The notes beneath the pieces were generated by a model, which saw only the letters and a program-made list of their open reading frames with translations, had not been told where the DNA came from and searched no databases. 64,000 nucleotides of DNA from Fimbriosthenelais zetlandica (Eukaryota), in the NCBI GenBank assembly GCA_977030845.1, contig OZ365118.1, positions 16,554,001-16,618,000 on the forward strand, read 5' to 3'. Numbering within the stretch: the stretch's first letter is position 1; every line of letters starts with the position of its first letter. Made by a program: the position numbers and the translations under genes. This document shows positions 6,501-32,851 of this stretch, in pieces.

Positions 6501-7539
6501 AGAACACACAAAAGGGCGTGGACGGTTAAGGAGACACATGTTTTATCAAGGAGCAAGTAACCAGATGACGAGGCATGGGGATATGATAGATACCATGCCC
6601 GGAGACAGAGATAGTTTACACTAGACAGGAAACCTCCCTCCACCAACCTGTCTCTCCACCCTATTCCCACACCCCTCCCCCACCTCCCAATGCAATTCTT
6701 ATATTCTTATTCATGCCAATTGTTTAAAGTGCAATGCATGATGCCTATACCTCAGTTCACAACTGCTTGGCAATCTGTAAGTTACCGTAGATTCAAAACT
6801 TTTTAAATTTAGAATGTTTGCCACAGGCTGTGACATCCAGGGCCACTTTAGTCATAATTATTTTTGGAAAGAAGTTTTCGAGAATAGAAACTATTAATCC
6901 ATTCTGTCTGGTACTCCTTTATAAGTAAAGGTATGAAAAATAGAATCATTTTAGAAGAAAAGGGAAAAAAATCAGAGAAGTATCTCTTGTGTCTATAAAT
7001 TAGTAGGGGATTTAGCATGGCGCAGGTGGGAATCCCAATTATATGTTTTACAAAACGCACTTTATGTGTGGAGACTTCCCAGGTAATTGGATTCCTAATT
7101 CTGGCACTATACACTCAGGCATTACAAATGTCACCTTATAATCCCTATGCTACTTTTAGCGCGAGGTCGACCTAAAGAATTGTATTCACGCTAAAATAGG
7201 ACAATTGTGATGGGCACAATCGGGGGGACATTCATGCAATTGGAGGGAAGAAGAAAAGAACTAAGGTCGCTTTAATGAAAGTGGGCCCAATAAGACCTGT
7301 CGACATACTCCTTCTCAAGGTATGTCAATATTCACATGGTCTAGGAGCTCATCTGATGTTCTTTGTGTATACTTGTATAAATATACCAACACTATAAGGT
7401 ACATTTCACTTCTCAAAGGACACTATGGCAATGGGGGCCATAAGGCTGCAAAGTAGACAGGATCACCAGACTTCAAAGACAGGGGGGGGGGCACTTGTAT
7501 TACATTCTGAGACAAGGACAGGGGCGCCTGGAAGATGGG

Positions 7540-7760
7540 CTTCCTCGAATGAACTCTGGAAGATATATAGAGGGGGAAAGAGAAAGATAGAGAAGATGGG
7601 AGAATGGGAGAGAGGATGGGAGAGGGAGAGAAGATGGGAAAGGGAGAGAGGATGAGAAAAGAAAAGAACATGGGAGAGGGACAGAAGATTCAAGATGGGA
7701 GAGGGAAAGAGGATAGGAGGGGGAGAGAGGATGGGAAAGGAAGAAAGAGAGGATGGGAAA
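7540..7760. repeat. GA-rich low-complexity tract
   Basis: Repeated GAGAGGATGGGA-like units. Confidence 0.85.
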
Positions 7761-8873
7761 GTGAGACACTTTGAACAGATAGAGATATGAGGAAGGAGTA
7801 AAGTAAAAGTTACATATTATATAGGGAAGTGAGATTGGCGAGGAGTTAGAGGGTGCACAAAAGTCAAATAGAGGACAGAGATATTCAGAAGGGAGAGGGA
7901 ACGGGGTTGGATATGGGGAACTCATTTGTTTCCAACCCCTGCAGCTGGAGCAAAGAAATGGCCAGATGTATAAATGCATAATATGGAAGTATTATTTCTA
8001 GGGCTTAGTGTATCAACTTTTATGGATGCATACTTTAGATATTACATCGAGATATATGCATACATGTATGAGGGCATATAATAGCCTAATGCGTACTACA
8101 TGATAGTAATATGTACACATGTAATAGCACTGTGTACACACATGGGACACTGCAGATTTCTGGGGCTGCATGTGTACGCATGGGAAAGCACATTATTCTT
8201 ATTGTGTCATTGTTGTTGGGGCACCCATATATTCCCAGGCAATGGTTAATTATCTCTAACTTATCTCCAGCATCATGCATGACTGGGATGCGCCGCTCAT
8301 TACCATTAGTGGTTGATAGTCGGTTCATCACAGTGTGTGGTGGGGGTATTATAGTGGTTCCTTACAGACTTCCCACTCCTCTCTACCTCCATATATCATG
8401 TAATGGCAATTAGTAACCCTGCATGTCCAGAGTCAGTGATCTATTAATAGCTTCACTCGCAGAACTTTTCATTGTTTCTCAATGCTACAACATTAAAGCA
8501 TTCTAAAGAGTCATTAGCCTGGACTAGGCTGGAGTTGTTTCCAAGTTTCCAAGACTTGTAACCCTAGCTTCGCTCACGATACCCTAATTCTGTTGATGAC
8601 ATAGTCACATTGATATAACAGAATGGCCATTATGATAGCATTTTCTCTGTGGTCACTCCCATTTAGGTACGGGTACCACATAATTATTTAAGCCCAATTA
8701 ATAATTATCCCATTTTAATAATTGCAATATCCACAAACCTAACTAGGCATTGAGTTATATGGGCGCATGTGCATGGCAGATAGGCATCTGTATTAGAGAT
8801 ACTGGATGTATACATGTGTATCAAATTTCAGATGAAAAATAATTAAATAAAAATCAAAGAGAAAAGGACTTAC

Positions 8874-9429
8874 CATCAGCTGGCCTGACGGTCATTGACA
8901 TGTTGATGGCCCCAGATTTGGATATAGTGATGAACTTGCCGGCGTCATCAAACAAAACCCAATAGTCATTTAGTACTGAACCAGATAATGCCAGAGATCT
9001 GGATTGGCGTTCTTGATTTGTGAGGGGTGAGTTGGGGCCGTCTTGAGACAGGCTCGTGTTCCAATGTTCGGGTAGGCGACCCTGGTGGCGAAAACTAACC
9101 CCCGATGATGGTCGCCCACTCACCGCAGGTCCATCTCTTGTACTTCTCTTCTGGTAACGAGGGTATTCCGATGATCCATCTCTTTGGTGGTGGACAGGGC
9201 CTTTAAGCATGGACAGGATTGAAGTGGATGATGATGATGAGGAAGAGGAGGAAGAGGTATGGGAAGAGGGGAGGTTGAGTCTGAGACTCATTGCAATGGT
9301 CATTGATGGTAAGGTCCCCAGGAGCACCAACAGCCCGGCGATTAACACGGAGACAGCGGACTTCAGTCTGGGGGACGGGCTGGCCGCATGTCCGGGCTGT
9401 CTGCACCTTCTAGCATCGGGCCACTGCAT
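8874..9429 (-). CDS. First coding exon of a secreted fibroblast growth factor (FGF)-family ligand (partial gene; probably FGF9/16/20-related by synteny)
   Basis: ATG at 9429 (MQWPDARR...), 185 codons + 1 nt, ending GCT GAT G|GTAAGT (phase-1 donor, 8873-8868). The hydrophobic stretch AVSVLIAGLLVLLGTLPSMTIAMSL resembles a signal peptide. The C-terminal LFDDAGKFITISKSGAINMSMTVRPAD(G) aligns without gaps to the FGF consensus [27 protein letters not shown](G), and the intron falls at the conserved FGF exon1/exon2 position. Exons 2-3 were not found in 1-8870. Confidence 0.75.
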
Positions 9430-11339
9430 GCGGTAGGAGGTGGAATCCGGTGTGACCGGACTCCAGGGGATCAACTGACTCCTGCTATTCAGATGAGTGG
9501 GACCTTTGCCACCCAACTCCTCCAGGGCTCCTACCACAGCCCCGTCAAGTGTATGTGTGAAGAATCAATTTTTTTTTCTAAATGTGCAGCGGCAGTTTTT
9601 AAAAAATATGAGAAAAGTGGCAAAAATAACTTGGAGGCACACTCACTCACACACCCCCGCCGGCCCACACACACACACCAGTGTGGTGGTGTTGGTATGG
9701 AACAAGAGTGCAGTGTGGTGTGTAGTGGTCGGTGGCTAACTATCACCTACCATCTGCCTTAGTCAATGCACCGCTCTAATTCACCTCTCCACTCAGGTGG
9801 AAAAATATCTCTAAGATCTATATGAACATGCATGTTTTCTCAATATCCTCCTAATATAAATGCACTGGCATTCTTTTTTCCCTCTTGCAATTCCAGAAGG
9901 GGTAACAATTTCTCAATCAGTGTGCAATGTGGGTTTGCAGAGGTATCTGTGGCTTTTTTTCCTGTGGTGAATAAATATGTTACTTATTCCTCGTGACAAT
10001 GTGGAGAGATATAATCAATAATAATAATAATCCCTTGGTTATATGCTTGGTCACTTTGTATTAGCAGACTAGTTCACAGCGAAGTTTTCTCGTATCCACT
10101 CTATCAATGTAATAAGTTGCAGTAGTAACAGTGTGTTGCGATTCCAGCTCTTGCTTTGCCTTTTCCAAGCCTGGCAGTGAATTGTCTAAAGGACTTAAAT
10201 GTTCTCCAGTCGCAGGGTGGAGGGGGAGAAAGTGAATGGTACTTTGATTTCTAGGGAAAGTGCTACTATACCAGTTACTGCAGTAGTACCTGCTGCTTAG
10301 CGCCCCAATGGTGCAAGACCTTCTGCTCCCAAGTCTCCTGCTGCTGCGGCTGCTGCGGCTGCTGCTGCTTGGGAGGCAGGTATAAGGATGCGGCGCTCCG
10401 GTCCAGAGCACTTGGGACCGGTTGGCTGGGACTGCTTCTGTAGATGAAGTAGTAGTTGTAGTAATCGTAGTAGTAATGGTATTTCCACACACAGGCCTCT
10501 TCAATGCACCACTGGCTTCCCCCACACAACAATGTATCCTTGCTTTCCCACTCCCTTCCCAACTAATACCCTGAAATCCTTGGGTAGACCCTGTAGTAAT
10601 AGTAGTAGGCTGTAGACTGCCTTCTGATCGCTTCTTCTCTCCACTTGGGAGATGGGAACTCAGCCTAGCCATAGCGGGCTAAGTTCACTTCTTGTGGCCA
10701 TACGTTCTAAGTCCTTTGGATCCAACACTGACACAAGAGATGATCTCTTAATAACACAAGTACAGAGCCAATGGGTGAAAAAGTCCATCTGTCCTTGGTC
10801 TCTCAAACTCCAGGGCCGCCAATGAAGCCCCTGCACCCATCGGACTACAAAGAATGAATATACAAGTTTGTAGCCTATAGCTCGAATACACACTCCTTAA
10901 AGAAACTTAACAGTTCTCCAATACACAAAAGTACTCCAAACTTCTGGTTTTTCCCGTGTCCATGACTCTTAGAACTAGTTCAGCAACTTGGAGTCAAAGG
11001 AATTGCTTAAAATCCATGTAACTCTGCTCTGATAAGCATATATGCATACATTGGGCATTTCCAGCTATATTGTAATCCCAGCTGCACTTTAGCAATAGTT
11101 TCAGCTGCTCGATTATTAAAGTTTTCTTCTATCAAATGGAAAGCACGTTAAAACACATATGGCGGAGTGCAGAACATGGTTCCTTCCTCCTTCTTCCTTA
11201 TAAAAATCACTCCAGGGTATTGGGTATAGACGGATGGTCTGGGTCGGAGGAAGAGCCAGGACGGAGCGTTGTGATCTGAGAGGATATCTCTTCCACTATG
11301 GCCTTCAGTAAATGTCGTCCGCGGTGTATAGTCGAACGC

Positions 11340-11410
11340 TGTGAGTACACACCACCGTACGAGAATCCCCCTGGTGGATATATATTTAAACCCCCACCTA
11401 TGACGTCATG
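11340..11410 (-). promoter_or_regulatory. Putative core promoter of the FGF gene: CRE palindrome plus TATA-like element
   Basis: Perfect CRE TGACGTCA at 11401-11408 (10-bp palindrome ATGACGTCAT). On the minus strand it is followed by TTTAAATATATAT (11390-11378) and a pyrimidine-rich initiator-like stretch near 11340-11355. The orientation points toward the FGF exon. Confidence 0.45.
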
Positions 11411-12263
11411 ACACCTGAGCCCACTCCTTTCTCACTCAACTCAACTCACTCACTCAGCAAGGCTCGCTCTCTGCCTTTGCACGACGCTTTGCACTCCTAT
11501 TATTTTAAGTCATGGCAAATTGAATTATTTATGAAGAGCTTGAATTTTCAATGTTAGCCGGTCCAATGAGTGTTGGCCCAGTAGGTGCCGGTGGTACACG
11601 CTCCTTCTCTCTCTCCCTCTCCCTCTCTCTAATGGGTTTTCTTCTGAGTCTGCTGGGAAGTTGCAGATCTCTACCATGGCCAACTCCAGTCAGATCTGTG
11701 TGAGTGGTACAATTATTGTCACTCTACCACTCAACATTTTTTTCCGCCTTAAGTTAAAGGGCAGAAAAATCAATAATTATGTCGACCTAAGCTCTAGGCT
11801 AGGCCTAATCAATGATTTACAATACAGGTCTTTGACCTTAAGTCAGATAATCCTTAATGGAACTTGTAATGAAAACATGTCAGGGGGCCTACACTTTGGG
11901 GTAGGCCTACTTTCACTTCATGGATAAGCCAATAATCCTGTCACCGTGCCTTTGATAGGCCTCCACTGTAGACCTAGGCCTATGTCCATGCATTTCTATC
12001 CATTGAAATCAACTGTGAGAAATACCCTACATGTCACCTGGGTAGTAGTTTATCCCAATTGTCCCGGTATCACTGGCACAAAAGTTCTTCTCTTATCCTA
12101 TAATAGGTCTGTCCGCGTCTGTGAACAACTAAAACTCAGTCCTCCCACGGGTGTGTGGTGATAGATCTAGGCCTATGTTCTCTACCGACTGAGTTAGCTC
12201 CCTTCCCCACTCCCCCCGACTGCCACAGCTCAGCGCAACCTCCCCATGTGTCAAAGTTGTTTT

Positions 12264-13952
12264 CAGTGGCGGATTTAGGGGGGGTGCGCGGGGGCGCGCG
12301 CACCCCCCTTTTCAAAATCAAGCTAGGGTTAGGCGGCTATTCTGCCTCATCTTAATTATTTAGTACAGAAGCTGTAAGTTCACCGTCCTAGCAGACCCAT
12401 CCACTCTGGGGGAGGATGTCCCCTTGCACACCCCTGGTGACTGGGGTGTGGGGAGGCAATAGCCGCCTTGTTACGTAAGGCAAACAGCATAATAGGTGTG
12501 AATAGGGAAAGTTAGATAGTGGAGAAATGTGGGTCAAAGTGGTCAGTTGGACTAAGCAGGAGCGTGCATATGTCTGCACCCCTGGCCTCTTTTAACATGT
12601 CATTCTCACTATGAAGATGGGCCGTAGGCCTAAGTCTTATTTTCACTTGAGCATGCATAAGGGATGGTTCAAGTACGAAGTTTGTAGCTAGTCTGGGCCT
12701 AGTTCGAAACTCAAGGAACAACAAAAGCTTGCATACTTTGTTGCTTTAATTGTTGTATATTATAATTTTTGGTTAACTTCGATGAGCCATTTTAACTGAT
12801 TCTGAGCCAGTCTCACTCATGGGGGCGGGGGTGTCTTTGCCGGAAAAATTACGGGCATGTGCCGCCCAGGTGTCCAAATGGTGACCGAAAAGTTTGCCTC
12901 GTAGACGGGTAAAATACCACCCAACAGTGTAAGTTCCCCTATTGTGCCTATTACCAATACCCATCTCTGCTTCCAATTAGACTTTTATTGGGGGCCGTGG
13001 CTCGGTTTCCCAACTGTTTTAAGAGGCAATCCAAAGTCAAAAACGGATTTTAATTAACACATGTGGTTATTGTGTAAGAGACGGTACCTAAGGTGACTAC
13101 ACATCGCTAAATCCAGTCCACCCCAGATGACATTTTATAAGGGGTCAATGAAATCTAAAGGATGGCACGTTCCTAGTGACCATCATACTTCATAGGGGAA
13201 GAAGCGCACCCCCCCCCCCACCCCTGATCCACTTTCGACCGGGGTCATATAGGAAAATAACAGAATACCAATAAATAATTTTTAAAAATTCAAAAATCAT
13301 TTAAAATCTTAGTACTTCTTATTTCGAATTATTCTTTTTTATAGTTTTGTTTTGCTAAATATTGTCTTTATACTTAGATTCAAATATAAAGTAATTTAAT
13401 TGTGATTGTAATGTCCTGTTAAATTTCCCTTTCCAATTAATGTCCAGTAAGGTCACCCCCGCCAGGGCTTCATTCAGAGGGGGGGGGATATCCCCCTCAT
13501 CAACCTGCCGAGTAATATTTTTTCAATAACAATTGTTAAGAACTATATTTGAGCGTAAATATTTGAGCCAGAATGGCGAATAGTTTTTCACCCCTAGCCT
13601 AGAGCAGGCTCCATGTAAAATATCTCTACTGAAGTTGTTCATTTAAGACCTTATTTTACGTCCCAAAATGCACCAAATTACAGCTTAAATTCCAAAATTT
13701 TCCGGGGGGGGGGGGGGCATGCCCCCGGACCCCCCTAGCAATGCTTTGGGCCTCCGGCCCTCGCAAACGAGTCCTTTTGGCGCTCAGATTTTTGTTATAG
13801 TTTATTAGCGTTGAAAGTAAATCTGTATAATATTTTGCCGGACAAAACTATAATTTTCACTATATGGTTAGGAGCCCAAAATTATCCCCCCCCCCCCCTG
13901 GTGGAAACCCTGCCCGCGCACCCCCCTTTTGGAAATCCTGCATCCGCCCCTG
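12264..13952. mobile_element. Non-autonomous DNA transposon (outer element) with CAG...CTG termini and 5-bp TSD (hAT5-like by inference)
   Basis: The left end CAGTGGCGGATTTAGG (12264) and the reverse complement of the right end CAGGGGCGGATGCAGG (13952) form an imperfect 16-bp TIR. Both sides carry the direct repeat GTTTT (12259-12263 and 13953-13957). Subterminal GCGCACCCCCCTTTT occurs near both ends. No transposase ORF. Confidence 0.7.
13463..13912. mobile_element. MITE nested inside the outer element, with 5-bp TSD
   Basis: The left end CAGGGCTTCATTCAGAGGGGGGGGGATA and the reverse complement of the right end CAGGGTTTCCACCAGGGGGGGGGGGGGGATA form a ~28-bp imperfect TIR. TSD is CCCGC (13458-13462 and 13913-13917). 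Removing the element restores the outer element's subterminal motif. Confidence 0.75.
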
Positions 13953-14147
13953 GTTTTCTCCTCTTTCCCTCCCTCTACGCCGCTTCCCTGCCTATATCTC
14001 TCACAGAAGGACTTAAACGACCATTCCCACCTTAGATCTAACTCCGATCTGTACACAGGGCCTTGTTTTATTATCAAAATCGAGCCAGAACATGTCCATT
14101 TAGCGAGATCGCTTGTCAAAATAACTCCTAACTGGGTCACACCGCCA

Positions 14148-14212
14148 ACTTCCGGTTTACTTTTAACTCCGGCGCATGCGCAGTGCCAGCCCACGAAGCA
14201 AGATGGCGGCCG
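14148..14212 (+). promoter_or_regulatory. Housekeeping/mitochondrial-gene promoter: ETS(GABP/NRF-2) + NRF-1 + YY1 motifs
   Basis: ACTTCCGGT at 14148-14156, GCGCATGCGC at 14172-14181, and CAAGATGGCGGC at 14199-14210 overlapping the MICU start codon. Confidence 0.7.
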
Positions 14213-14415
14213 CCTTGAGGAAAAACATCCGACCCCTGGTCAACCAAATTCTCGCTCATAGGAGGACATTTTACAATTATACAACCAAAAATGGCTCACA
14301 TCCCAGTCTGCCCTTGGTTCTAGCATGTGGGTGTTCAGTGGGGGCCGGATTGACGCTGTATTTATCGAGTAACATGAGGAAAATGGCGCAGATCGACACT
14401 GTGTATGCTGCAAAG
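14203..14415 (+). CDS. MICU3: Calcium uptake protein, mitochondrial (MICU2/MICU3 pro-orthologue), exon 1
   Basis: Strong-context ATG (AAGATGGCG), 71 codons. The Arg-rich, acid-free N-terminus MAAALRKNIRPLVNQILAHRRTF resembles a mitochondrial presequence. It is followed by a hydrophobic segment LPLVLACGCSVGAGLTLYL and VYAAK, then the phase-0 donor AAG|GTAAGA at 14416. In frame with exon 2. Confidence 0.8.
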
Positions 14416-17400
14416 GTAAGACCTGCCTCGCTGACACTGTTGTTATTTAACCTACCCTGTGTGTTTACCATCGCTTTTTCCGCCTCTCTCAATACATTTA
14501 TACCCCAATATATGTGCACATCACCACCCAACATACTAGGCTGGATGTCTGAAGGTTTCAAACAGTTAAAATGAATCCATTGAGTGCTGCCTTCGTGTGC
14601 CTGTAGACACGAGGTCACGGACCAATGTAAACATTCATTCATGTGGCGCTCGTGTTGTGGCCTATTTGTTACCCCCGCTGAATGACAGCTCTACAACAAG
14701 CCCCGCCCCCTTTATCTCACACTGTCCCCTCCCCCTCCCCCCTACCCCCTCCTCCCAGCTGATTGCATGATGCTGAAGATGTCGCAACTCAAGGTGATGG
14801 ACTACTTGAGTTACCTACTTTTGACTCTGATGTCAGCTTTGGGCCTGACGTGTCCCTACTCGTCTCCGTACCTATAATGCTTATCAATAGCCTATGTATC
14901 CGTCTCAACTTGCCCATTTATATCTTGATTTTTTTTCACTGACCCTATATCACCTTCCCCATCTATTATACTCAAGGAATGGCGCAATTCATTCCAGTCA
15001 CAATAAACAAAAAATTAGGTTACTTCCCCTTTTTCTCCCTGAAATATCTGACGTAAGACCTATTCCTTTGTGATTTAAAATAAAAATAATCTAAGGGCAT
15101 TGCTTTGACATGAAAAATATACCTATTATTTGCTCTCAAATCAATGTGATACACGAATCAGACCTAATCCTAGATGGAATGTCTGGTATGTGATTCTTAT
15201 AAGGATACGGACTAAATTATATTATAAATGGATTTAGGATTGAATTATAATTTATTTATCATGACTTGAAATCATGACTGATGGGTCATTCTATCTAAAA
15301 CGGTCCTGCCATGACAGAGTAGTATATGAAAATGGTGGTATTTGCCCCCGACCTGCTCTTGTCTACCCCATATGTAAAAAGATGGACCTTGATTTTCAAA
15401 TCTATTTTCTCACTTTAAAGCTTTTCATTCAATTAGTAGACTAAGAACATGTACAGAAATACCTTAAAATTGTAGCTTGAGAAATAATTATTTTTCTGAT
15501 ATTTGTTTGTACTCGGTTCCCATTCCCATTTCCACCTTTTTAAAATAAAAATCCTTCATACTGATATAATTATATAAAGCACTTTTTGGTGGCATTACCT
15601 ATTTTATCAGTGATGTAATTTTCACCTGGGCCAACTATATAAGATTTCAAACTGGAGAGAGCGATCCATGCTTTGTTGTTTTGACACGCCATTAGTCCCA
15701 AATAGTGTGGTTGCATATTCAATTGGATACAGTCATTGGTATCCACATGCCAGCTGTCAAATTATGCGTGCCATGTCATGGCAGAAGGTGGGTACTTTAC
15801 CCGGTCCCGCTCATTTAAAAATCGAGAAGGGAAAAAATTATAACAACCACGGTCGGTATTTGGTTGAAAAATCTGGTCTAAGTTCACTGCGTGCTAGATT
15901 GTGGTACCGTAATATGTGCCGTTGCTTTTGTGATTTACGCGAGCTGCAGATCTGATTCATATCCTAGGATATGTGGAATTTGACTAACACCATATAGAGA
16001 GACAAGATTGTATACATATTTATGATTCTAGGCGTAAAACTTAGTTTTACAGTCATGGGGTTCCTTTTAAATTTAATGGTTGATAAAATATCCTTGAAAT
16101 GGAGAAAGAATTTGCGGTTAATAAATAATTAAAGAAACTAAATTTCATTTCCACTTTTGAATATGGTTCACCTTCCTCTGTAGAGTGGGGCCTATAGAGG
16201 TCTAGGCCTATACATACAGGCCTGAGACCCTTGGTGGATTTGTCCATGGTGACGCACCTAGTGATCTTTCTCCTCTCTCGATATATTATGAAGGCGGTCG
16301 CCAGTGCAGCGTGCCTTTGATCACAAAGCGTGGCGAACACAACAAGTGTCCGTGCTCACTCCGCCCTATGGCTTTATAATGGCGGGGGACCCCTCAAGCC
16401 CCAATGCCCCCAACCCACTTCAACCCCCGCCCCCCATTTTTTACTGATTTTAGATTCGCCACATGCTCTAATTTGGATCTCTAGTCGGTCTGGTGGTAAA
16501 GTGGCCTTAAATGGGGTTAGATCTAGTATAGTGGGGTCTCCATCCCCCTCACTAACCCAACCCAACCCCTACCCAGCAACCCCAATAATAAAGAAGGGAG
16601 TAATAACACAGTTTTGTTGGATGATTCACTTTAGCCCAAGCTATAATAGTATAATGATTAATGTCATATAATTAATATGGGAATTGCTAAGAAATAATAC
16701 AATGTATTATACTATGTATTATATCGAGGAATCGATTTATGGAATTTAGAGTACTTTTATTATAAAATTTATTTGAAGGAAAGTTCTCCTTTTCTACGAC
16801 ACCACAATAGAAACGCCTCTGTAAGCCTACATGTTTACGTCTACAAAGATCTTATGATTTATTACACTTTTGTACTCATTTTCCATAAATCATCGGAAGA
16901 GGGTCTGGGTTTGTGGTTGATGGGTGGGGGTGATGGTGGCGGGGGGGGGGGGGTAGTCTGACATGGAGGTCTCTACTGATAAAACGTGTTTGTTATCTGC
17001 GTGTTAGACTACCTGTTACGTCGCCTAATTGCTGTCCAAAATTGGTCTCGAGCTTTCTGATTCTTATCTGCCCCCTCTCTCCTTTCGGGCGATTCACAGT
17101 CAAGTTGCCAATAGCAATACAGGGCTCGCCCCAGCCTCGCCGCGCCCACCTTATCTCTGCCCTGGTTGGGGGCCATTACTTCTTGCCTTTCTCCAGGCGC
17201 GAGACCCCCTAGTCGAGGATAGCATAGAAATGTGGCCAATTTTTATCCCACTTGGAACATAATTTAGCTTCGCATACTTCAAAGTTACAGGAAAACCAGC
17301 TTGTGAAAAGGGTCTTTTCCTTAAAACTTTGCAGTATTTAATATAGGAAAAAGTTTGTTGCAATCATTTCCCTTTTCCACCTTAGATGGTGCGAAATCCC

Positions 17401-20400
17401 CTACCCTCACCTCTACCTCAATAATTTAGGATAATTTACATGTGCACCCTTAGCATGGACATGGAATTTGAACTGAAAGTCAACTGCGTTTAACTGTTAT
17501 ACAATATTTTAACCCAGTAAAAGTAAACTGTGAAATGTGCTGAAAAAGTCCATCAAAATAATGAGAATGGGTGAGATCAAGGCCCTTTGATCACTCATTA
17601 ATTTGTGGGGCGCACTTTAAGTCCATTCCATGCACCTTTACCTCTGGAAACCTTCCAGAAATTAAATCCTCTGGAAAGTTTTTGGAAAGTTCATTTAGAT
17701 TTCTCATACCTCATTGAGAGTAATTATTCTATCACTTGAGCTTGCCAAACATTGGCTTTTTACAGAGCACTGAGCTTTTACGGAGGTGCACATTTCACGA
17801 CACCCCTCCCCCTGTCCACTTCCACCATTTTTCATTATACAAATTCAAATAATTTCTGCCCAAAGTGTACATTTATTTCCAGGATGCACTCCCAACATTT
17901 CGGACCATAACTGTTAATATTTCCAGGGGTGAACGACCTTTCCCTTGTCTGTTCCCTTTCCTCAACCATACCCCTCCTTTCCTTGTTTACGTTGCAAACT
18001 TCCTCACCCGATTCTTGTACATTTCATTTAGCAAACCCATTATTCTAACTCATGAAAAGTTACGAACCCGGCTTACAAACATTGCCTTGAGAATCCTCAC
18101 TTCCTCCTTCTCCCCCTCACCCCCCCCCCCCTCAGTAATAGAGATATCAAATCTTTTGAACCCCCCTCCCTACTCCGCCCAGAGATGAATGTTCTTCTCT
18201 ATTACTAGTGATGCCGGCTTCTGAGCCTCCAATATGGTTGTGGTTGGGAGTTGTGAAGACCAAGGCCAAACTTTTCCACTTGTTTTCTGTCGGATCACAC
18301 CCTAAACTATTGTAGGTCATACCCCCTCGAGGCCAGACACCTCAGGTGGCTTCAGTTTGTGGGGCTCTGACTATACGTGATCCTGGGCAAGTAGCGTTAT
18401 TATAATGCACCCTGTTTACATTGAGAATAATCCAATAACATCTCAACAATTGCGTTCTAAAGTCAGAAGGTGAGAAAACATGTTTACATCCTTAATGACA
18501 CTAAATCCTGTACTCCACTGCTGCGATTTTGCTTGCGACACTACTGCGACAAAGGTGATGATTGTGTCGCAATGAAAAATGTATCAGCGGCCTTAAGGCC
18601 TTAGACACTTGGACTATAATGTATAAATTTGATTGTGACACAAGCATGGATGTAATTAGTCAATAATCAATGAGTTATCTCTATTATATGTGCAACCATA
18701 GGCCTAAGCATTGTTGTACAACGCCCTAAATATCAGAAGCCTTACTGACCAGCTGGGAATGAGAACACATCATTAAGTTTGTCCCCTTGATTGGTGGCCT
18801 TTTTTATTGCCCATTGTTCCCCACAATGCCTTCCTTTAGATGGGGAAGAGCTGAAGGCTCACCCCTTACCTGATCACCCAGGTCTACATGGACTATTTAA
18901 TAAGAGTGTGTTGATTTTGGTAAGCTAGCCACAAGGCGAGACTCTCTCTATACACAGTGCTGATCCCAAGACAAATAATGCTTGACCTCTGCCTGACCCT
19001 ATACTGACTGGACATGGATCCTAATGTCCAAGCGCACCTCCTTCACATGCCTGCAACTCAGGTGTCCAGACACTCCATCATGGACTGTTTCTGAAAAAAC
19101 CTAGCCCACTTTAGTTATAAAAACTTACCTTTAGTCCATTCCCTGTATCTTTTTTTCCATGAAACGGTCCCCATATTCCTCCCCTGCCCCTTTGACAACA
19201 CTACAAGATGTTTTTATTTGGGGTTTGTTTTATACACTAGGTCATTTGCAACCCTCGCTCTTTGGTGGGTCTCTTGACTCCCAGCCATATCCATAAGACA
19301 ATATTTATTGCCGGGAAATTTAAGTGAAATTCTCAAATGATGTTTGACATAGAAACGTGGCAAGATATAGGCTATGAAAAACATTCATATCTTACACGGA
19401 AAATGTAATGATTTAGTCTGAAGGAATTCTGTTTGAACAAAAGTTCTACCAATAGCCTACAGATACTTTGAGATTTTTTCCGATATCCACTTTGGTTTAG
19501 AAAAATATTCTTGCTCCGAAATAACACTTTTTCTAGCCACTGAATGTAATTTTCAAGTCTTTATAATCTTTTCATTTATAAGTATATAAATCGGATCTTA
19601 TTCCCTTGGCAAATCAATATTAAGGGCAATTCCCCCCACCCCCACCAGCACCCCGTGTACATGTATAAAAGCTAAGTACACATAACGGATCTTTGCTTCT
19701 CCCGCTCTCTGTATATGTACTAATCATCCTGTCATATTTACTTCTCATTTGAAGCGAGCTGGAAAGAAAATCTGTCATATTTGTGCCGAAAATTACACCT
19801 CGACTCGCCCATGGGAGCTGGGGGCCATGTCTGGGCCGGGGAAAAATAGGGTTGCTACTCTTTGAAGTTTACAAGGCCATCCATCTTTCTTATTGTCATT
19901 GATTCAAATAGTCTCAAGCAGTACGATGTCACGACAGATTACTAATATGATTCTTTAAAAGGACGGCCATTCTTTAACATTTGTGTCATAGACAGTTCCA
20001 TTTTGTACGAACGCATTATTGATTGAAAAAAAATAATAGGAAATTTTCGGCTAGGAGTTGTCATATATACCCGAAGGGCAATCCTTACCTAAATATATGA
20101 AGTATAATTCATATATTTTTCTACCCCAGTTCCCATGCAGACAAAACCAGATGAACAATTTCCAATTATGACCATAGCCAAAGGCTTCCATGTATTCCTC
20201 TGTCCCCACTCTCTTGTGAAGAGTTTTGGTGGAAGAAATAGAAGTTAATGAGACTCCCTCGATTTTCCTGAAAGCTTTCTATGATTTACTAAATGGTTTT
20301 CAGTTAGGATTATTTTGAAAAATACCTTACTAAATGTTGGGGTCTCAAAGGGTAGGTCTTCCTTGTATTGGTCTCAAAGTGTAGCTCTTCTAGGAATTTT

Positions 20401-20949
20401 TGAATATATGTATTCTAATCTGTATACATACCCTACATGTGCATGTATGATACTCTTTTTTAAAAATAGGAACTACACTCACATGCACTCACACATATAT
20501 AAAATAGTGCATATTACAAATTAATATATGATAATGTATGTATACATGTACACTAGTCTATGTGCTTTTAGGATAATGCCCCCACACACTCTCTTAGCCG
20601 CGACCCTGGATGCGTGGTGGGAGTTGAGGGCATTGGTTAACAATGTAACTAAATGCTTTATTCACGGGAACAGACTTCCATGGACGTTAATAGAAGTGAA
20701 AATGCTGGGGTAATTTGAAGGTTGGTGGTTGCATGGCCCCAGTGCGACATATATTGTGCACTGTCATGCCATGCTATGCCATGCCATGTATTCTTTTATC
20801 CCAGTGTGGGATTTGGCAGGAGAGGGTGGGGGTAAAGGTAGGGATGGAGAGGAGAGTGAGATAAGAAGTATGAGGGAATATGCTTTAGAATTAGAAAAAA
20901 AGATTTTAACTTCAGCTCTGAAACTTTTCACCAACGTGAATACCTAGGG

Positions 20950-21180
20950 AACAGATGCAAGGGTGGAGGGAAGGAGAGTGAGAGAGAGGAAACAAAAGGT
21001 ATAAAGATTCTTGGAAGGAGGAGAGATAGGCAGGCAGGTAGATATGGAGGCAGAGGGAATTGACTCAATAGATAACCTCCATCAAAATAACATGGAAGAA
21101 CAAATAAGGTAAGAGAGATGACAGGGCATTGTTGAGAGATCGAGATAGAACAAGAGAGAGGAAGGAGACTGAGAGAGAGC
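20950..21180. repeat. GA-rich low-complexity tract
   Basis: Purine-rich GAGA/GGAA runs. Confidence 0.7.
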
Positions 21181-24100
21181 ATAGCGGTTAGTTGCGCACC
21201 AATGTACTAGTATACCCCCCTCTCTCACCAACATCCATCCAGTACCCTGGACCTATATTTTAAGAATTGTCCCAGGTTGGAGACACCACCACCACCCCAC
21301 CACCACCACCACCACCTTGCCACCACCCTCTGCCTACCTGTGGAGACATTAACGTTACTCGGTGGTCTAGGCTTATTATTGCCTTCAGACTTTCAACTGC
21401 CAGGGTAATTGTCAGGCAGCACATTGCTTTGCACACCCCTTACCCCTTCGTGCAAGAAGGTTTTTTTTCTCATGCCCTTGCCCCCTTGTCTAGACTGATA
21501 CTTTTACTGCCATTTTGCTTCCCAAGCCATAAATCTTCGACGCAACAATTTCATGCAGCAAACATTCTATTTTCCTTAACCCCAAATGAGCAATGTCTTT
21601 GAAAAATCTCCATAAAATTAATTAATTCCCCATTATTTCAATGATATATTCGTGGTCTTATCCTGGATAAAATTTCACAGTATTTCTGCTTTGATAAATA
21701 GATACCCCGCTAGCACGTACTCCTCAATATTATTATTATTTCTGTTGGACATTTTTTCACCATCCCTTGACACCGTTCACATCAGGGGCATCACAGAGTG
21801 CAGTGTCAATCAAAGGCCTTCATACAATGCTGGTGGGAAATTTAAAATTGCCTTTGAAGAAACATGATTGTTTGATGTTGAGTTGTGGGGTGGGGTAGAG
21901 GATGATCGTGCCCTGGCTAGGGTCATGGGCCTGGGAGACAATCCAGAAATGGCATCACGTATAAAGGTGCTATAATAATATGAAGCATCCTTTTTGATCT
22001 CCACCGAATAATCATAGTCATTTGACTTCACCTTAGATCTGTTTGAACCATGCAAACTTTCAGAGTTTGCAAACAATAGATTGGCAGACGTTGCAAGAAA
22101 CTTTTCCAAAATCTGATATTTTTCGGTAACAATAGGCCCTTCCTCATGCACCATTCCTCTTGCACCATTATACTTAAATTATTTTGTAAAAAGTTCTGAG
22201 AATAGATATCTTAAAACTTTGTTGGGAAAATTTTATGTCTTGGGAGTGTAGGCTTGTTAGTCATGCATCATGTTCTTGAATAGAAGATTTCTTAAGTTGT
22301 TTAAGGATGTTTAATTAACAAAGGGCAGTCAGACTTTCCCATACATGTATTTGACCAGTTCGCGCCCACTCACCCCCACCCGCCCCCGCCCCCACCCACC
22401 TACATACACACCATGCGCATTTGTTCAGCCTTGCGTGTAACTATGGGAGTCAGTGATACTTACCCTGGGAGATGAACTTCTATAGTGTTCAATCGCCACT
22501 ATACGGTCATCATTTCCCCAACTAATTCAGTCATAATGGAAAAAATGCAGCCATAATAAGGAGCTCCTTACACCCCCTTGTTTGTAGGCCATTTTTGACC
22601 TGCCACATTATTACGACAAAGATCACAGATTGTAGCATCATCTCTTCCATGGCCAGGAATATCAGAGTGTAGGCGGGCGGGAAAATAAAACGTAAATCAA
22701 ACTGAATGTATGTGTGAAGACAGGGACATGGCGGGTGATCTAGGTAGACTTTACAAGTTTGAGCACCATAACGCTGACCCTGTCTTGACTTTCCTCCTAC
22801 TCTAGTAGGGATGAGTCAGGTGGGGTATTTCACCCAGTGGGCGGACTGCCGTATCTCACAATGACCACTTGTACAACTCTTCACTGTGGACCTTTACCTA
22901 CAGAGTTCATGGGGGCTGTTCTAGAATATTTTTTTTGGTTTATTTTATATTTTAAATTTTTCCCCAAAGATGAGATGTTTCCAAGGGATGTTAATCTGCA
23001 ATGAACTAATTATGACTTTGCATTTGGCCTTTGCTGGAAAAGCCCCTCCCTCTTCCACGAATCCTGCTAATTTAGCATAATGTCTTCAGGGGATTTTAAA
23101 GGATTTTTATATTAAAAATTCCTACCTGAACTTATGAACTTATCAATCTGAATCATATGCTGAACGGATGAAAATTTAAGGCAGAATAAAATCAGGTCAG
23201 GAGTCCCTAGACGAATATTTTTAAATCCTGGCCCATTGAAACATTTGAGTTGATTGAACTCATTTAGTTTTATGTTGACTTACTCGCCCCATGCCCATGC
23301 ATGTCACCGCGCCGCCACCAACCCCCAATGCCAATTGTCTCCGTTTTCCACTCATTTAGACTCCTTATCAAACAAGGATAAATCCTATAAATACATTTTA
23401 CAATTCTCTTAATACCTCGGCCCAGGGTTCAATTTGGAAAATCCAGATGTTCGAACGAAGTAACCGACTGTTATACAATGCCTTTTATTGTATGGCCTCT
23501 ACCTGCATCACGCCAATGCTGTACCAGGTCTGTGAGGTGTCGGTCTATAGTTCACTCACAGATCAAACAGCAGACCAGATTTACCCGGGGCTGATACCCC
23601 GTCTCCCCAATACACATATATACCTACACCCACACTCCTATGTCTTTGGAAAACCCCAATCTTTGTTGCCTACATTTTTTATTTGACATGTCAAAGGGTT
23701 ATAATATTTTCCATTTTCCCCAATAATTATGGTAATATTCCTTCAAATTCATTGAATTTATAATTATAAATCAAACCAATTCCACCCATTTATTGTATCA
23801 TGTATTTGATAACTTTCTAAATGTTTGAATTCAAACAATTATGTTGAAGATTTGTGTATATAAGTGTATTTAATTCTATTATATTTAGCTGCCACAAAAC
23901 ATAGGTGCAAACTCATATGTCACGACTCTTTGTTCCCATATTCAATATCAGTCACAGCACAGCTACCTTCTCTGAGGTGTACATCTTAGACAGACGTAGT
24001 TGCTATCGGCAAGGCAAAAAAAATGATGGCAGCGCCCTATAATAATGCACCCATGTACCCAAATATATAACCCTCAAGAAACCCAATCGATCAGTTGATA

Positions 24101-24834
24101 TTTCTGGATTCATACGAGAGCCATGTACTAACAAAAACTGTATTCTCAGGCCAAAGCGTGAATTTTAGGCCTATAGGTCCACAAAACGATGCCTCTCAAC
24201 AATATCCCTATGTACGTATATTACAAATACCCTGGTCTGAAGGGGCCATAAAGTTGGCGTTTTGTTACCAGGTATGATTAGAAGCGACAGGGCCATGTTT
24301 TGATCTTTCATAATTTCATCATCTTATAGTAATCATAAAGGGCGTTCCTCCTCTTTGTATTGTTTGATCCCCCGAAAAAAAATCCCATATAAGTTAATGT
24401 GAATAACATCCTGCAATAAAAATGCTTCTACAGCAGATACCCTGCCATTCCCATTGTCAATGCATTGTGCGAAACTCATGATTGTGCATAATGCAGGGAG
24501 GGGTTGCGAAATCTTGATATTGGTACTTTTTTTCCTAAAGGGGGGGGGGGGGGGGGGGGGGTGCGGGAAAAGCGTGGGTGTATTGTACAACAATGATATT
24601 TCATATCAAGCAGTTAACTTGAATACAACTCAAAGGCTACTAATACTCATAACGGTACTTTAAAGTATTTAGTTACTCTTGAGAATGCCTTTTCTGCCTT
24701 GATAATCATTTTAATAGTTTTTTCCCCAAACTAGACATCACCCACGCCCCAAATGTCATGCCCTTGAGAAATCGTTCATTGCCCTTTTATTAAATCATAT
24801 ATGATTTTTCCCCCGTTTATATGATTTGAATCCA

Positions 24835-24919
24835 GGGGCCTGTTTCATTAATAATTTCATTCCACATTGACCAATGTTAAGCTTGATTTATACCTCATCA
24901 ATATTTTGAAACATGCCCC
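24835..24919. mobile_element. Small MITE with GGGGC...TTTCA termini (PIF/Harbinger-like by inference)
   Basis: Left end GGGGCCTGTTTCA versus right-end reverse complement GGGGCATGTTTCA (12/13 match); no clear TSD. Confidence 0.5.
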
Positions 24920-26609
24920 TAATCCGTAGCTCTCTTCTTTGAGATGTTGAGAGTTGTCGGAGAAAAAATAGCCACCTCTCAGATATAATTGACTCATCAT
25001 ATGACAAAAAGAGAGAATGGGTAAATCTCACCACACCCCTCATCAAGATAGAAATATGTACATACCCCCTCCCTCCATATATTCCCAGGCATCTTCTATT
25101 AAATCTTATAATATAATATATGGACGCAGATCTGATAGGAATTTCTCTGAAGGAAAGAATAGTATTTTTGGGTAAATTTCATGTCGGTCCTGTTTGACTC
25201 TGAAGTTAGTTATTAAGTGATCTTTTTTATTGTGAATATATTTGTATTTGGAATGTAAATGGAGTTGGACCCTGGTAGACCTACTCTGGGCTAATATTCT
25301 CATAGAGCAAGCCCAGGATTTTGTATCTGAAACAGGACCTGATGAGATCCTGCTCTATGTTTGTATTATTACAATGGCCCTTCCTTTGAACGATTTATGA
25401 AAAGAAATACATCCTTGATTCTAATCATAATTTGCTTATTCAGCGAAGATAAGCGACAAAAGTATGTATCTTATTCAAAATCCTTGATTGTAGACATAAT
25501 TTGCTTATTTAGCAAAGTTAAGCACCAAAAGTATTTCTCTCATTCATAATATATTGATATATTAATTTAATGAAGATATAGCTGACATATACTGATATAG
25601 CTTTAAATTCAAATCCATCCATCCACCATTTAATCTCATGTGAAAATACATTAGAAATTCCATACGCCCCAACCACCGATTTTTAATAGGGAGGTCCAAC
25701 AGTCAGGTCTTTAAGGCCCGATTTAGTGACAATCCATTTTATTTGTAACAAGTGTGGCTGGGTCCATTTATCCCTGAAGTAAGGATCTGTGATAGGCTAG
25801 TTGACATCTCTATGCCCTCGTGTCTTTTCATGTGGTTGGATGTGGAGCCCTGGCATTCCGACACAGACAAGTGCAAAGTGTGCCACCACCACCACCTCCA
25901 CCACCGCTAACAGATTTTTTTTTTTACTTATCTATAATTCTAGCTTTCTCAAATTCTCCCCTCCATTCACATAGAAGGCAGAAGAAAACTGATACGTCCA
26001 ATTTTTCCCTCTACTCTCTCTATTTTATTTTGTGATATTATTTTGAGATTTTCGAAATTTCACCCACCCACACCCACACCTCCCACCCACACCCACACCT
26101 CCACCTCCTAGTGGTAACTAGTCCTCCAGCCAGGTAATTACCTGTTTGTAAAACCACCTGTGGCCATCCTTACTTCAAAGACCCATGAGCCGCGGCCAGG
26201 TGGAGGTGTGGGAGGCCGCCTCCCCTAGATACCTGGACAAGGTGAAGAAATCACTCCACCAACCAGGGGGTCACTATTTTACTCTAAAATATACATATCT
26301 GTTAAATCCAGGGGGAAATTATTGTCCCATATATGATGATCCCCCCGTTTATTTCCCTCCAAAATGCCATGGATCTCTTGTGCTTGGACACCGAAAATGA
26401 CTGTCCCATTTACATACCTAGAACTTCCACGATGCCTTTAAAAATATATCCAAGCTTTATTCATTATTTGAAATTTGAAATATAAAACTTGTAGAGTAAC
26501 CCCCTGTAACCTGAGGTGAGCTTTTAACGTGGAGGGTCCATCTGGTCATGGAGACATTGGCCTTCACCTATAATTCACCCCCTACCTTATCTACCTCTCT
26601 ACCTACAGG

Positions 26610-26940
26610 CTAGAGGAGGGAGAGAAGGAGAAGGAGAGAGGGATATACTACAGTAGAGAGAGGGAGAAGTGAGGGGGAGAGGGAGAGGGGGGGGGGGGGG
26701 GGTGAGAAGAGAGGGGGAGATACTACAGTAGACTCCAGGAAAGAGTGAGTGAGAGAGAGGGAGAGAGTGTGGGGGAGAGAGGGAGTACAAGATATGAAAA
26801 TAAAGATAGGTCGACATGTATATTCAAGACAGATGCATATGGGATTAGCAAACATATGTACAAGGAGACAGAGACGAGATAGAGAGAAGACAGAAAGTAG
26901 AAAAGATCAGGAGAAAGACAGAATGGGAGGTAGGTAGGAG
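26610..26940. repeat. GA-rich tract with poly-G and duplicated TACTACAGTAGA
   Basis: Direct inspection of the sequence. Confidence 0.85.
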
Positions 26941-28750
26941 AGGTGGCTGGCTGTCCATGGCTGGAGGCTTATCTGATAATGGCCATAAGCAGGCGGCATG
27001 TGATGATTGAGGGGGGCAGGTCGCCAAGTCCTGCCCTCCCCTCTTGTTGATGATCCATCATTAGGCCTCTCACCTACAGCCAAAAAACACTTGTGTACAT
27101 TTAGGCCCTGCGACTATCTTCTCCCGGACAAGTTTTCTTTTGCTTTTAGTTTTTGTCTCAAAATTTTATTTTTTACTTTTGAAAAGTTTCTTCCTTCAGC
27201 GGTATGTGTCTGAAGTACTTTTGGTATAGTTTTTAGTTTACAATTTACTACTTAAGTCACGCCCTTGGTGTATCATATAAGGTATCAATAGTATCCCTGA
27301 CTTTGAATTCAAAAAATGATCAAAACCAACCCCTGATCAATACGAATTTTTACGTCCAAAATCGTCTCAGGAAGGCTAGTATTTAAGATCAAATAAAGAA
27401 GAATTCAAAAGAATCTAAAAAGAAATTGATGCCCCCTTTTGGACTCATTTTCACTTCGCACCTCAGATTTAGTGGTGTATATTTTTGTGCCTGGATTATA
27501 GCAGGCCAGGCATTATAAATGACCTGATACACCAGCTTAATCCGCGCCTCACATGGTGTGTGTATATCATAGTGTGTATACATGTAGTCATTAAGTTGAA
27601 CGTCCAATATTGACACCACCATTGTAATAATGCTATGTGGTTTGGAATCGTACTAAGTGTAAACAGTCGGCCTGTGTGAAATATAGATGGGTGGGCGAGG
27701 TGGGCATAAATTACTGCATCCTATATATTGATACTGGTACTCATAAATAACTCGTCACTTTCTTATATATCACTTAATTAACTAGACAAAAGAATTAATA
27801 AATTATTCAAAATTCAAGATTGATGTGGCATATTATAGGCATATATTATTTAGTTATTTTATATGCGTAATTTCAGGAATATACAGAGTTTCAGGAAATC
27901 ATATAGATTTATATAGGCCTACCTAATTTTAGCAAATAGAAGTTATTATATTTAGACCGATGTTTCCTCCTAGTCCTCATATAGTTTAAAAAATTGTTGA
28001 ATGGACGTTACCCAAATATTCATACATTGTTAACATATTTAGAATTTTCCTGTGACATCTCTAGTGTTTTGTCATGTATTTTCCTTCGTCATCCTTGTGC
28101 AAGAATGATGTGTAGAATTGAGACATTCAGGCTTGGGTGCTTGCTTCCTCCACTTCCGATTATGTTTCAAGATCCTTCCGATCCACACCCCTCTCCTACC
28201 GGACGCTTCCTTGAAAAGTTTAGAAATAACTTGTGCAGGCGCCCAAAGTAGGTCTTGTCAGAGGACCCGCGCTAGCAAAATATTATGTCGAGGCGAGGTC
28301 AAAATATTTAGGACCTCACATTCTTGCCTTCTCAATAATGTGCTTTGGGAACATTTGGAGAGGGGCTAGGATGAGAATGCATAATATGTGTACAAGTATA
28401 GGAAGGAACTCTCATGTGTGGGGTATATTTTCCTTGATATTCCCAAAAGTTCTGTGAAATTAAAATGTGTCATTGCCTCCCACTGTAGAAAATTGGGTCC
28501 TCAAAATATATACTGGAATTTAAGGGCTTACTCAGGGAAAAATCAAATAAAAGTCAGGGAATTCTGTTTTCATGAACTGATGGGAACCATGTCATAGATA
28601 TGGCTTTTGGTTAGTCCCAAAGGTGGTCGCTTTAGCGGGGGTTCACTATACCCGACACTGAAAGTTGTCACTTTAATGAATAAATATAGGACCCTTAAGA
28701 TCTTTGAGTATTTTTTTAAAGTTTTATCAATTATTTGTTGTTTTTTTCAG

Positions 28751-28907
28751 GAGGCAGGGCAGGAGAGTGAAATACGCGCCATCACCAAAGTTGAGCAGAC
28801 TCAGCGAGAACTACGCTTCCTTAGCTTCGCGTCAGTAGAATATGAAGGCCAGGTCTACATGACCCCACAAGACTTCCTAGAATCAGTCATGGAGGAAGTG
28901 CCCAGAC
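28751..28907 (+). CDS. MICU3: Calcium uptake protein, mitochondrial (MICU2/MICU3 pro-orthologue), exon 2
   Basis: Encodes EAGQESEIRAITKVEQTQRELRFLSFASVEYEGQVYMTPQDFLESVMEEVPR, matching the MICU2/3 hallmark RF..FASVEY.GQ.YMTPQDFL.SV. Flanked by a tttttttcag acceptor and a C|GTGAGT phase-1 donor; 157 nt. Confidence 0.93.
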
Positions 28908-31900: not shown

Positions 31901-32756
31901 ACAATTGATTTCTTAGAATGATCTCAAAAGTCGGATATAGACTTAATTATTCCATTTGGGGATCAGTTCTCTGCCACCCCCGAGTTCTCACTGTCTAAAT
32001 GTGAGGTACATGTACTAAAGTTCCCTCTCGGCATTGTTTGTAAGGAAGTATCACTTGTGTCACATGCACATTAATGCATCTTGAAGCATCCTTCAGGCCC
32101 ACGCATGTAAACATGGTCAAAGAATAGGTCAGCCTATACTTTCTCACTTCTCAGCAAGTGCGCTAACAGAAACTCAGATAAAATGCCAGCATTTTATGAC
32201 AATTTTCCTTATACAATACCCTGAAATAATTTCACAAATGATTCTGAAATTAAACCAAAATGTCTTGACTACTATAACAGAAATTACTTGAAGTACCAAG
32301 ACTAACAATTGGTTCCAATGCCCATTGAGCAAATTGAATGCCCATTTGACCTTACATTCCTCGCAATATATTCATTGTTTGACGATTTTGTGTGGTCAAA
32401 ATTACAAAAAATGCCCTGGTTTCATTTTCGATTATCACTCAGTTATCATGACATGTATAGGACCTTTATATTGGTGAACCATCCATTGACCCGTGCGGTG
32501 ACTCCTTTCTTCCGTACTCCCATCCTTCCATCCGCCTATTAGTAATTGTCTATTATGTAGGTGTAGGTGTACTGAAGAACCTCTAGGAAACCTACATCAT
32601 GATCATGCATTCTATTTACATGTATTCACTCTCTTACCTCTTAGGCAATATGTGTAGGAGTATCTGGGACTGTTCCATAAAAATAATATCCCATAGATTT
32701 AACTTTGGCTGACACTGTAATGCAACTTCCCCCAACCGTTAAATTATAAATCAATT

Positions 32757-32851
32757 GGGGCCATTTCATAAGAAAAATCTGTCAATAGATAATTGGTTAT
32801 GTCTTTGAACAATGACTTACGTGTGGCGCATCTTTGTTATGAGATGGCCCC
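32757..32851. mobile_element. Small MITE, same GGGGCC family
   Basis: Left end GGGGCCATTTCATAA versus right-end reverse complement GGGGCCATCTCATAA (14/15 match). Confidence 0.6.

Follow-up and report, generated by a model that had tools for sequence, protein, structure and literature searches.

A divergent FGF gene head-to-head with a MICU2/3 gene in Fimbriosthenelais zetlandica: a probable retained Fgf9/16/20-Efha linkage

Background

In tetrapods, EFHA (MICU2/3) and ZDHHC genes are located upstream of both FGF9 and FGF20 (Forconi et al. 2013, PMC3636272). An older origin of this arrangement follows from the comparison of 17 metazoan genomes by Irimia et al. 2012 (PMC3514665), who described 595 conserved ancestral microsyntenic pairs (CAMPs), each present in at least four major taxa. 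Fgf is one of the families that the paper names as belonging to ancient regulatory blocks, and fgf20a/efha2 is given there as a developmental regulator (trans-dev gene) with a non-developmental partner, a bilaterian pair conserved in zebrafish and a putative genomic regulatory block (GRB). Most of the pairs are organized 5'-5' and some of them are co-regulated. In zebrafish, trimethylation of histone H3 lysine 27 (H3K27me3) is found on fgf20a and is absent from efha2. Here we describe a comparable locus, a divergent FGF gene and a MICU2/3 gene in head-to-head orientation, in a 64,000 bp stretch of the genome of Fimbriosthenelais zetlandica (contig OZ365118.1, here C37, positions 16554001-16618000), which we call the window.

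The usual spiralian FGF repertoire consists of one FGF8/17/18 and one FGF9/16/20 gene (PMC8180254). In Capitella, only an FGF8-like gene has been reported (PMC3420111). The FGFA of nereids is so divergent that the phylogeny left it unresolved (Shalaeva et al. 2021, PMC8224027); it has specific expression patterns in regeneration.

A preliminary description of the window proposed that an FGF-like exon and MICU2/3 exons mark an ancient microsynteny, with the ligand belonging to the FGF9/16/20 lineage. The observation itself is confirmed by our analysis, and its interpretation is partly supported. We are fairly confident that the divergent pair is the retained ancestral Fgf9/16/20-Efha linkage and that the ligand is, by position, of the FGF9/16/20 lineage and probably the orthologue of FGFA. 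The idea of an ancient microsynteny with a bystander gene is not new, as the 2012 paper (PMC3514665) already makes this claim.

Two divergent neighbours

The FGF gene is encoded on the minus strand and the MICU2/3 gene on the plus strand, and there is no gene in between. A distance of 4,774 bp separates the two start codons, in line with the approximately 4.8 kb first described; once the FGF leader is counted, no more than about 3.3 kb is left between the 5' ends. Positions 8874 and 28907 of the window are the donor-side ends of FGF exon 1 and MICU exon 2, respectively. An open reading frame (ORF) scan of the 64 kb gave no long non-repetitive ORFs and no transposon genes besides the two. There are two to three FGF genes in the genome, and we estimate at approximately 1e-4 the chance that any one particular gene would have an FGF directly next to it.

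The FGF gene

The FGF gene is a single-copy gene of three coding exons, spans at least 21.9 kb (C37:16543010-16564860) and has a spliced product of 407 aa. The preliminary description had seen its first exon within the window. A motif scan of the 100 kb of DNA to the left of the window located exons 2 and 3, and with them the FGF core to which the minus-strand exon is joined by splicing (Table 1). In brief, exon 1 encodes the N-terminus MQWPDARRCRQPGHAA, a hydrophobic signal or anchor segment, a Ser-rich variable linker and finally ...WVLFDDAGKFITISKSGAINMSMTVRPADG, with which the beta-strands of the FGF core begin. The exon closes in phase 1 with the donor GATG/GTAAGT (GT at 8873/8872). Exon 2 reads G/LLRITALPAANGKLNLASLKGVRSNRFFCMHKNGTFYST and is flanked by the acceptor ...TCTTCCAG/ and the donor ACA/GTAAGT. 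Exon 3 reads ETFTRKSCAFREIHQQNHYITLCREK...QYFCVGYNKRKNILKRYCEGRAETFMNYL and continues into an Arg/Lys-rich tail (115 aa). The predicted ligand is of the secreted type: a hydrophobic signal at the N-terminus is followed by a variable linker, then by a divergent beta-trefoil core and a basic tail.

We settle the identity of this gene through an orthologue. A search with the 236-aa stop-to-stop frame of exon 1 found P0001, a 393-aa protein encoded by contig L028 (Logan, run ERR14707600) of a related species. Exon 1 matches the N-terminal half of P0001 over 99% of the exon length (43% identity, E 7.9e-24). The alignment of the complete 407-aa model with P0001 runs over the full length of both proteins, starting Met included, at 52% identity (46% over the core); each of the two splice junctions of the model has its matching position in P0001. 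P0001 in turn matches Pfam FGF with 41 bits (E 2.2e-10; cut-off 24), and in a feature search of the ESM Atlas its nearest clusters were all FGF, with a score of 0.90. In the 447-Mb assembly, which was the subject of all genome-wide searches, P0001 maps to this locus and to no other. On these comparisons, we regard the minus-strand gene as a real FGF gene.

The gene itself is difficult to detect. Exon 1 by itself matched nothing in Pfam, in the PDB or in a word-based homology search, and word-based searches with the FGF gave no relative besides P0001. Exon 2 matched Pfam FGF (PF00167) below the cut-off (16 bits, E 0.012) at profile positions 44-66, the place expected, and neither exon 3 nor the tail of exon 1 gave a Pfam FGF match when scanned singly. 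In the proposed Pfam check, the cut-off is therefore reached through P0001 and not by the gene directly, whose single exons stay below significance. A scan of the whole genome with PF00167 missed this gene and found nothing near the window, and such a scan is thus too insensitive for divergent FGFs.

The organization of the exons agrees with that of other FGF genes. Two introns interrupt the FGF core; the middle exon is entered in phase 1 and left in phase 0. Exon 1 ends in phase 1 at a Gly that aligns with FGF9 'RF-G-ILEF', and exon 3 opens at the motif E-x-x-x-x-x-C-x-F. Exon 2 of vertebrate FGF genes is 104 nt, and the 119 nt of exon 2 equal 104 + 15. The ancestral Fgf gene structure has two core introns (10.1101/2024.08.30.610304). 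From their positions and phases, we take the core introns of this gene to be these two ancestral introns.

L028, which lacks introns, is collinear with the minus strand of the window over the 5' leader and the 3' untranslated region (3'UTR), and is thus a spliced mRNA; the orthologue is therefore expressed. The ratio of non-synonymous to synonymous substitution rates (dN/dS) against the orthologue is approximately 0.28 (Nei-Gojobori), with dS saturated at approximately 1.5. The FGF gene is under purifying selection, yet fast-evolving.

The MICU2/3 gene

The plus-strand exons were initially described as those of a MICU2/3 gene, and this assignment holds. In phmmer searches against the PDB, exon 2 matched MICU2 (1.3e-7) and MICU3 (4e-6) better than MICU1 (0.05). 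The same order was found for the C-terminal exon, with MICU2 at 4.4e-21, MICU3 at 1.3e-19 and MICU1 at 2.2e-14, the last being no better than calmodulin. This exon (C37:16673262-16673420) encodes a canonical EF-hand loop, DIDGDGHLSHKEF, and matches Pfam EF-hand_8 (4.4e-6). A search of 1.8 billion representatives with it returned full-length 'calcium uptake protein 3'/EFHA2 relatives of sea slug, sea star, tunicate and insect origin, together with MICU2/3 from vertebrates. The MICU3 protein P0037 maps to this locus only in the genome. Judged from these matches, the plus-strand gene is the single MICU2/3-type (EFHA) gene of the genome, which encodes a regulator of mitochondrial calcium uptake, and not MICU1.

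The closest relative of the MICU protein comes from the transcriptome of a gregarine parasite of polychaetes and is probably a host sequence. This, like the resemblance of the FGF to nereid FGFA, agrees with an annelid source of the DNA.

The MICU gene is large. Using tblastn with MICU3 proteins of several phyla, we mapped downstream exons at window positions 68267 (weak), 87799, 88907, 116750, 117560, 118905 and 119262. The gene thus spans at least 105 kb and reaches at least 55 kb past the end of the window. Toward the 5' end, the mapped exons are separated by gaps of 14.3, 39.4, 19.4 and up to 27.7 kb, whereas the 3' introns measure 0.25-1.2 kb.

The N-terminus encoded by exon 1 is basic and devoid of acidic residues, and a hydrophobic segment comes next. 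From this composition it looks like a mitochondrial presequence, with a putative targeting role. Immediately upstream of the start codon is the palindrome GCGCATGCGC, which we take to be an NRF1 site. This is the sole occurrence in the 64 kb (0.00 expected from shuffles), and TTCCGG/CTCCGG ETS-like motifs are located immediately 5' of it. MICU would accordingly have a separate promoter of the housekeeping type, marked by this NRF1 palindrome.

Probable assignment of the ligand to FGF9/16/20

In searches of the PDB with P0001, the best natural matches were three FGF9 entries (6.4e-4 to 8.4e-4). Lower matches were FGF10 (0.01), FGF20 (0.011), FGF8 (0.015) and FGF1/7/12 (approximately 0.03), all in the range 0.01-0.04. 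The ligand also carries a C-x-F-R-E motif, a sequence hint toward FGF9/16/20. The only other clear FGF in the genome is an FGF8/17/18-type gene on another contig (C10:31.78-31.81 Mb).

A further, weak FGF-like exon (L003; C37:10394506-10394667; Pfam FGF E 0.5), reading ...YYLGVRDNGNIMPADQVNPTSHHAHFII, is located 6 Mb away on the same contig as the window. It could belong to a third FGF of very high divergence or to some other beta-trefoil gene.

We compared the ligand by eye with FGFA and brachiopod sequences on a published alignment (supplement S6, PMC8224027), and these comparisons are unscored. In Alitta virens and Platynereis dumerilii, as here, a second, fast-evolving FGF is present in addition to an FGF8/17/18 gene. 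FGFA of both species has the strand LKxxRxN(R/K)FxCM(N/H)(R/K)xG in common with the window protein and P0001. Likewise shared are a Cys where the 'YSS' motif usually has its first Ser, a basic insertion after it, and a Cys in the next strand (WCIGI against FCVGY/VCMGI), where other FGFs have WY(L/V)(A/G)L. The window protein and P0001 differ from FGFA in having two more cysteines and a long Arg/Lys tail.

FGF9/16/20 is known from lophophorates and a mollusc (Terebratalia, Novocrania, Phoronopsis and Lottia 158297; PMC8180254, PMC8224027). P0001 keeps the ...ILP(N/D)GTVxGTT... motif of Terebratalia FGF9/16/20, as ILPNGTVGTT, and also FLCMNxxG...CxFR(E/K), whereas the window protein itself has lost much of the first motif (FITISKSGAINMSMT).

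A place of the ligand in FGF9/16/20 is plausible from its linkage to MICU2/3 and from weak sequence hints, the best PDB match to FGF9 and the C-x-F-R-E motif. It is likely that the gene is of the FGF9/16/20 lineage and the orthologue of nereid FGFA.

Leader and 3'UTR of the FGF gene

The leader of the FGF gene is at least 1.4 kb, with alignment blocks of 70-82% identity to L028; a further 567 bases at the 5' end of L028 have no detectable match in the window. The leader contains a long upstream ORF (uORF) that is open in both species. The two uORF products have a common start (MARLS..LP.G) and a common end (ELVC) and are 33% identical (BLASTP, E 2e-8); from this conservation, it may be a regulatory uORF.

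The 3'UTR is approximately 5 kb (C37:16543010-16548000, window -10990 to -6000) and corresponds to L028:2881-7801. Long blocks in it are 70-80% identical at the nucleotide level in the two species; one of them has 77% identity over 488 nt. In the first 52 aligned FGF codons, the proportion of synonymous differences (pS) is 0.33, compared to 0.65-0.8 elsewhere. The conserved blocks in the UTRs despite the saturated dS, together with the low pS of the early codons, suggest nucleotide-level constraint on the mRNA. The UTRs, including the uORF and the 5 kb 3'UTR, are better conserved between the two species than the FGF core, which fits with position and regulation being more conserved than the protein.

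Comparison with the published Fgf-Efha pair

The locus resembles the published Fgf9/16/20-Efha1/2 pair in that a developmental FGF is located directly beside, and divergent from, a MICU2/3-type gene. The MICU gene is long and has very large introns, as have the published 'bystander' genes. The locus differs from the published pair in that the 5' ends are just about 3 kb apart and the ligand is far more divergent than the chordate FGF9/16/20 proteins. Unlike in the vertebrate block, ZDHHC2/15/20 is not adjacent, and the look beyond MICU that the preliminary description proposed gave no such gene: the nearest DHHC matches on the contig, at 3.80 and 7.00 Mb, are 12.8 and 9.6 Mb away. A ZDHHC neighbour is a feature of the vertebrate block and is not required for the published bilaterian pair.

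The linkage of FGF9 and FGF20 to MICU2/3 in vertebrates, on which the preliminary description built, is thus borne out by the tetrapod data cited above. Its proposal of an ancient microsynteny also stands, as PMC3514665 lists the pair as bilaterian and as a putative GRB; what it cannot claim is novelty. We consider it very likely that the FGF-MICU2/3 linkage was inherited from the ancestral bilaterian pair.

A feature of GRBs is present here, namely a developmental regulator, FGF, beside an unrelated gene, MICU, with unusually long introns. The bystander-enhancer idea rests on this long-intron pattern. Whether putative FGF enhancers inside the MICU introns are the reason for the retention is, in our judgement, evenly balanced. 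The fullest version of our reading joins all of these points: the gene is the FGFA orthologue, its retained MICU2/3 linkage marks FGFA as the annelid FGF9/16/20, and the FGF-MICU block survives with enhancers in the giant 5' introns of MICU, position having outlasted protein. We put this combination forward tentatively, as slightly the less probable side of the question.

MICU loci of other genomes were also compared. The MICU models of Plakobranchus, Papilio, Owenia, Dimorphilus and Tegillarca are 5'-incomplete or come with 10-kb flanks, too short for an FGF check. There is no FGF within 10 kb of the lamprey MICU3-like gene or of tarpon MICU2; since vertebrate intergenic distances exceed this flank, the result is uninformative on absence.

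In Lampetra fluviatilis (OZ110912.1, L034), one MICU3-like gene is located between a DHRSX-like gene and PARN. The lamprey cluster at 50% identity mixes MICU3-like and DHRSX-like proteins, and one of its members, at 734 aa, may come from a fused gene model. In Dimorphilus gyrociliatus (CAJFCJ010000005.1:1084852-1105860, L032), the annotated model is 171 aa long, but further MICU exons lie as far as 9 kb upstream of it, and the annotation is therefore truncated. In this partial locus, the gaps between the 5' exons are 3.7 and 5 kb. The genome of Dimorphilus gyrociliatus is very compact, and the gaps look unusually long for such a genome, which adds to the long-intron pattern behind the bystander idea.

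Alternative explanations

Several observations weigh against the retained linkage and the assignment of the ligand. The preference of the PDB search for FGF9 amounts to only about 4 bits. The family membership of the FGF exons, which are singly below Pfam significance, is carried by P0001, and a single-sequence AlphaFold2 model of residues 120-292 of P0001 was unusable (predicted local distance difference test score 36.6). The transcript evidence comes from the species of the orthologue and not from that of the window. A whole-genome scan with PF01529 found no ZDHHC near C37:16.5-16.8 Mb, and the linkage is here seen in one invertebrate genome. A blastn comparison with the partial MICU loci of Owenia, Dimorphilus, Plakobranchus and Papilio aligned exons only and gave no conserved non-coding elements.

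The adjacency could be secondary, with a ligand of another or lineage-specific FGF lineage that came to lie beside MICU2/3 by chance and independently of the vertebrate arrangement. The very divergent core, the lack of a Pfam match for exon 3, a circle of word-based relatives limited to P0001, the unresolved phylogeny of nereid FGFA (PMC8224027) and the position of ZDHHC outside the block speak for this explanation. We nevertheless think it unlikely: the prior for an FGF as the immediate divergent neighbour is about 1e-4 by our estimate, this very pair, in this head-to-head orientation, is reported as a bilaterian CAMP (PMC3514665), and FGF9 is the best PDB match. Moreover, the other clear FGF is of the FGF8/17/18 type, which leaves free the FGF9/16/20 slot expected in a spiralian (PMC8180254). 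It is also conceivable that the FGF-like gene is a relic that is decaying or does not signal, and that the pairing has no present function, given that the core is only 46% identical to the orthologue, below parts of the UTRs, and that extra cysteines and a basic insert are found within the trefoil. This is very improbable, as the gene has an unbroken frame of 407 codons with canonical splice sites, its two introns have kept their phase and dN/dS is about 0.3; in addition, the orthologue is transcribed and spliced and nereid FGFA is patterned in regeneration.

A different explanation accepts the ancestral linkage and ascribes its retention to a shared bidirectional promoter or co-regulation instead of FGF enhancers in the MICU introns. 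The head-to-head orientation with 5' ends at most 3.3 kb apart is compatible with this, as is the predominance of 5'-5' pairs, some of them co-regulated, among the CAMPs (PMC3514665). However, the ends are kilobases apart and not a few hundred bp. The NRF1-type site at the MICU start is typical of housekeeping mitochondrial genes, and the uORF-bearing leader and the large conserved 3'UTR of FGF are typical of a tightly regulated developmental gene. The presence of H3K27me3 on zebrafish fgf20a but not on efha2 (PMC3514665) and MICU exon gaps that are 10-100 times longer nearest FGF than the 3' introns also speak against it. We rate it as slightly less probable even than a chance adjacency. Based on these observations, we prefer a retained Fgf9/16/20-Efha linkage.

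Features of the window and its surroundings

The region between the two 5' ends presumably holds both promoters. The observed to expected ratio of CpG is 0.83-0.89 at 13750-14500, compared to a local median of 0.45. Apart from the MICU start and the 3'UTR of FGF, it is approximately 0.45 throughout, and the profile gives no indication for or against an unmethylated domain over FGF.

Table 1. Coordinates of the features of the FGF-MICU2/3 locus. Positions are those of the window unless a contig is named; negative positions are to the left of the window
Feature	Position	Strand	Remarks
FGF exon 3	-5487..-6032 (C37:16547968-16548513)	-	to the stop codon
FGF exon 2	-4484..-4602 (C37:16549398-16549516)	-	119 nt, phase 1 to 0
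FGF intron 1, 3' two-thirds	1..8873	-	whole intron 13,357 bp, reaching -4483
FGF coding exon 1	8874..9429	-	185 codons + 1 nt, ATG at 9429, inside ORF 8854-9537
FGF 5' leader, minimum extent	9430..10860	-	L028 568-1900 collinear with window 10860-9384
Upstream ORF in FGF leader	10064..10672	-	203 codons; counterpart L028:740-1240, 167 codons
Region between the 5' ends	10861..14171	.	bounded by L028 collinearity and the MICU start
NRF1-type palindrome GCGCATGCGC	14172..14181	+	perfect match, 22-31 nt upstream of the MICU ATG
MICU coding exon 1	14203..14415	+	71 aa (MAAALRKNIRPLV...), from ORF and donor AAG/GTAAGA
MICU intron 1	14416..28750	+	14.3 kb, splice sites read, without long ORFs
MICU coding exon 2	28751..28907	+	...RELRFLSFASVEYEGQVYMTPQDFLESVMEEVPR, ends in phase 1; acceptor ...TTCAG/, donor GAC/GTGAGT
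MICU intron 2, first 35 kb	28908..64000	+	approximately 39 kb overall; gene continues to C37:16673420

MICU intron 2 contains a 30-bp minisatellite of approximately 14-15 copies (96% matches) at 50181-50647. A similar array, which reads as proline-rich, is found past the end of the window at 71804-72374.

Past the 3' end of FGF, at a distance of 16-22 kb, are two ORFs without introns, of 695 and 625 aa (C37:16520600-16527100, window -33363 to -26969, plus strand). Both carry leucine-rich-repeat N-terminal cysteine motifs (CPERCDC..., CPLSCVC...). Exons encoding CUB and trypsin-like protease domains are found further to the left, at about -61 to -65 kb of the window.

Implications

Spiralian FGFs are too divergent for trees, and a conserved neighbour is an independent marker of orthology. 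What this locus adds, modestly, is positional evidence on the annelid FGFA: if the orthology holds, FGFA is the annelid FGF9/16/20. It also singles out the approximately 100 kb of MICU introns as the stretch in which FGF enhancers could be sought in an annelid model.

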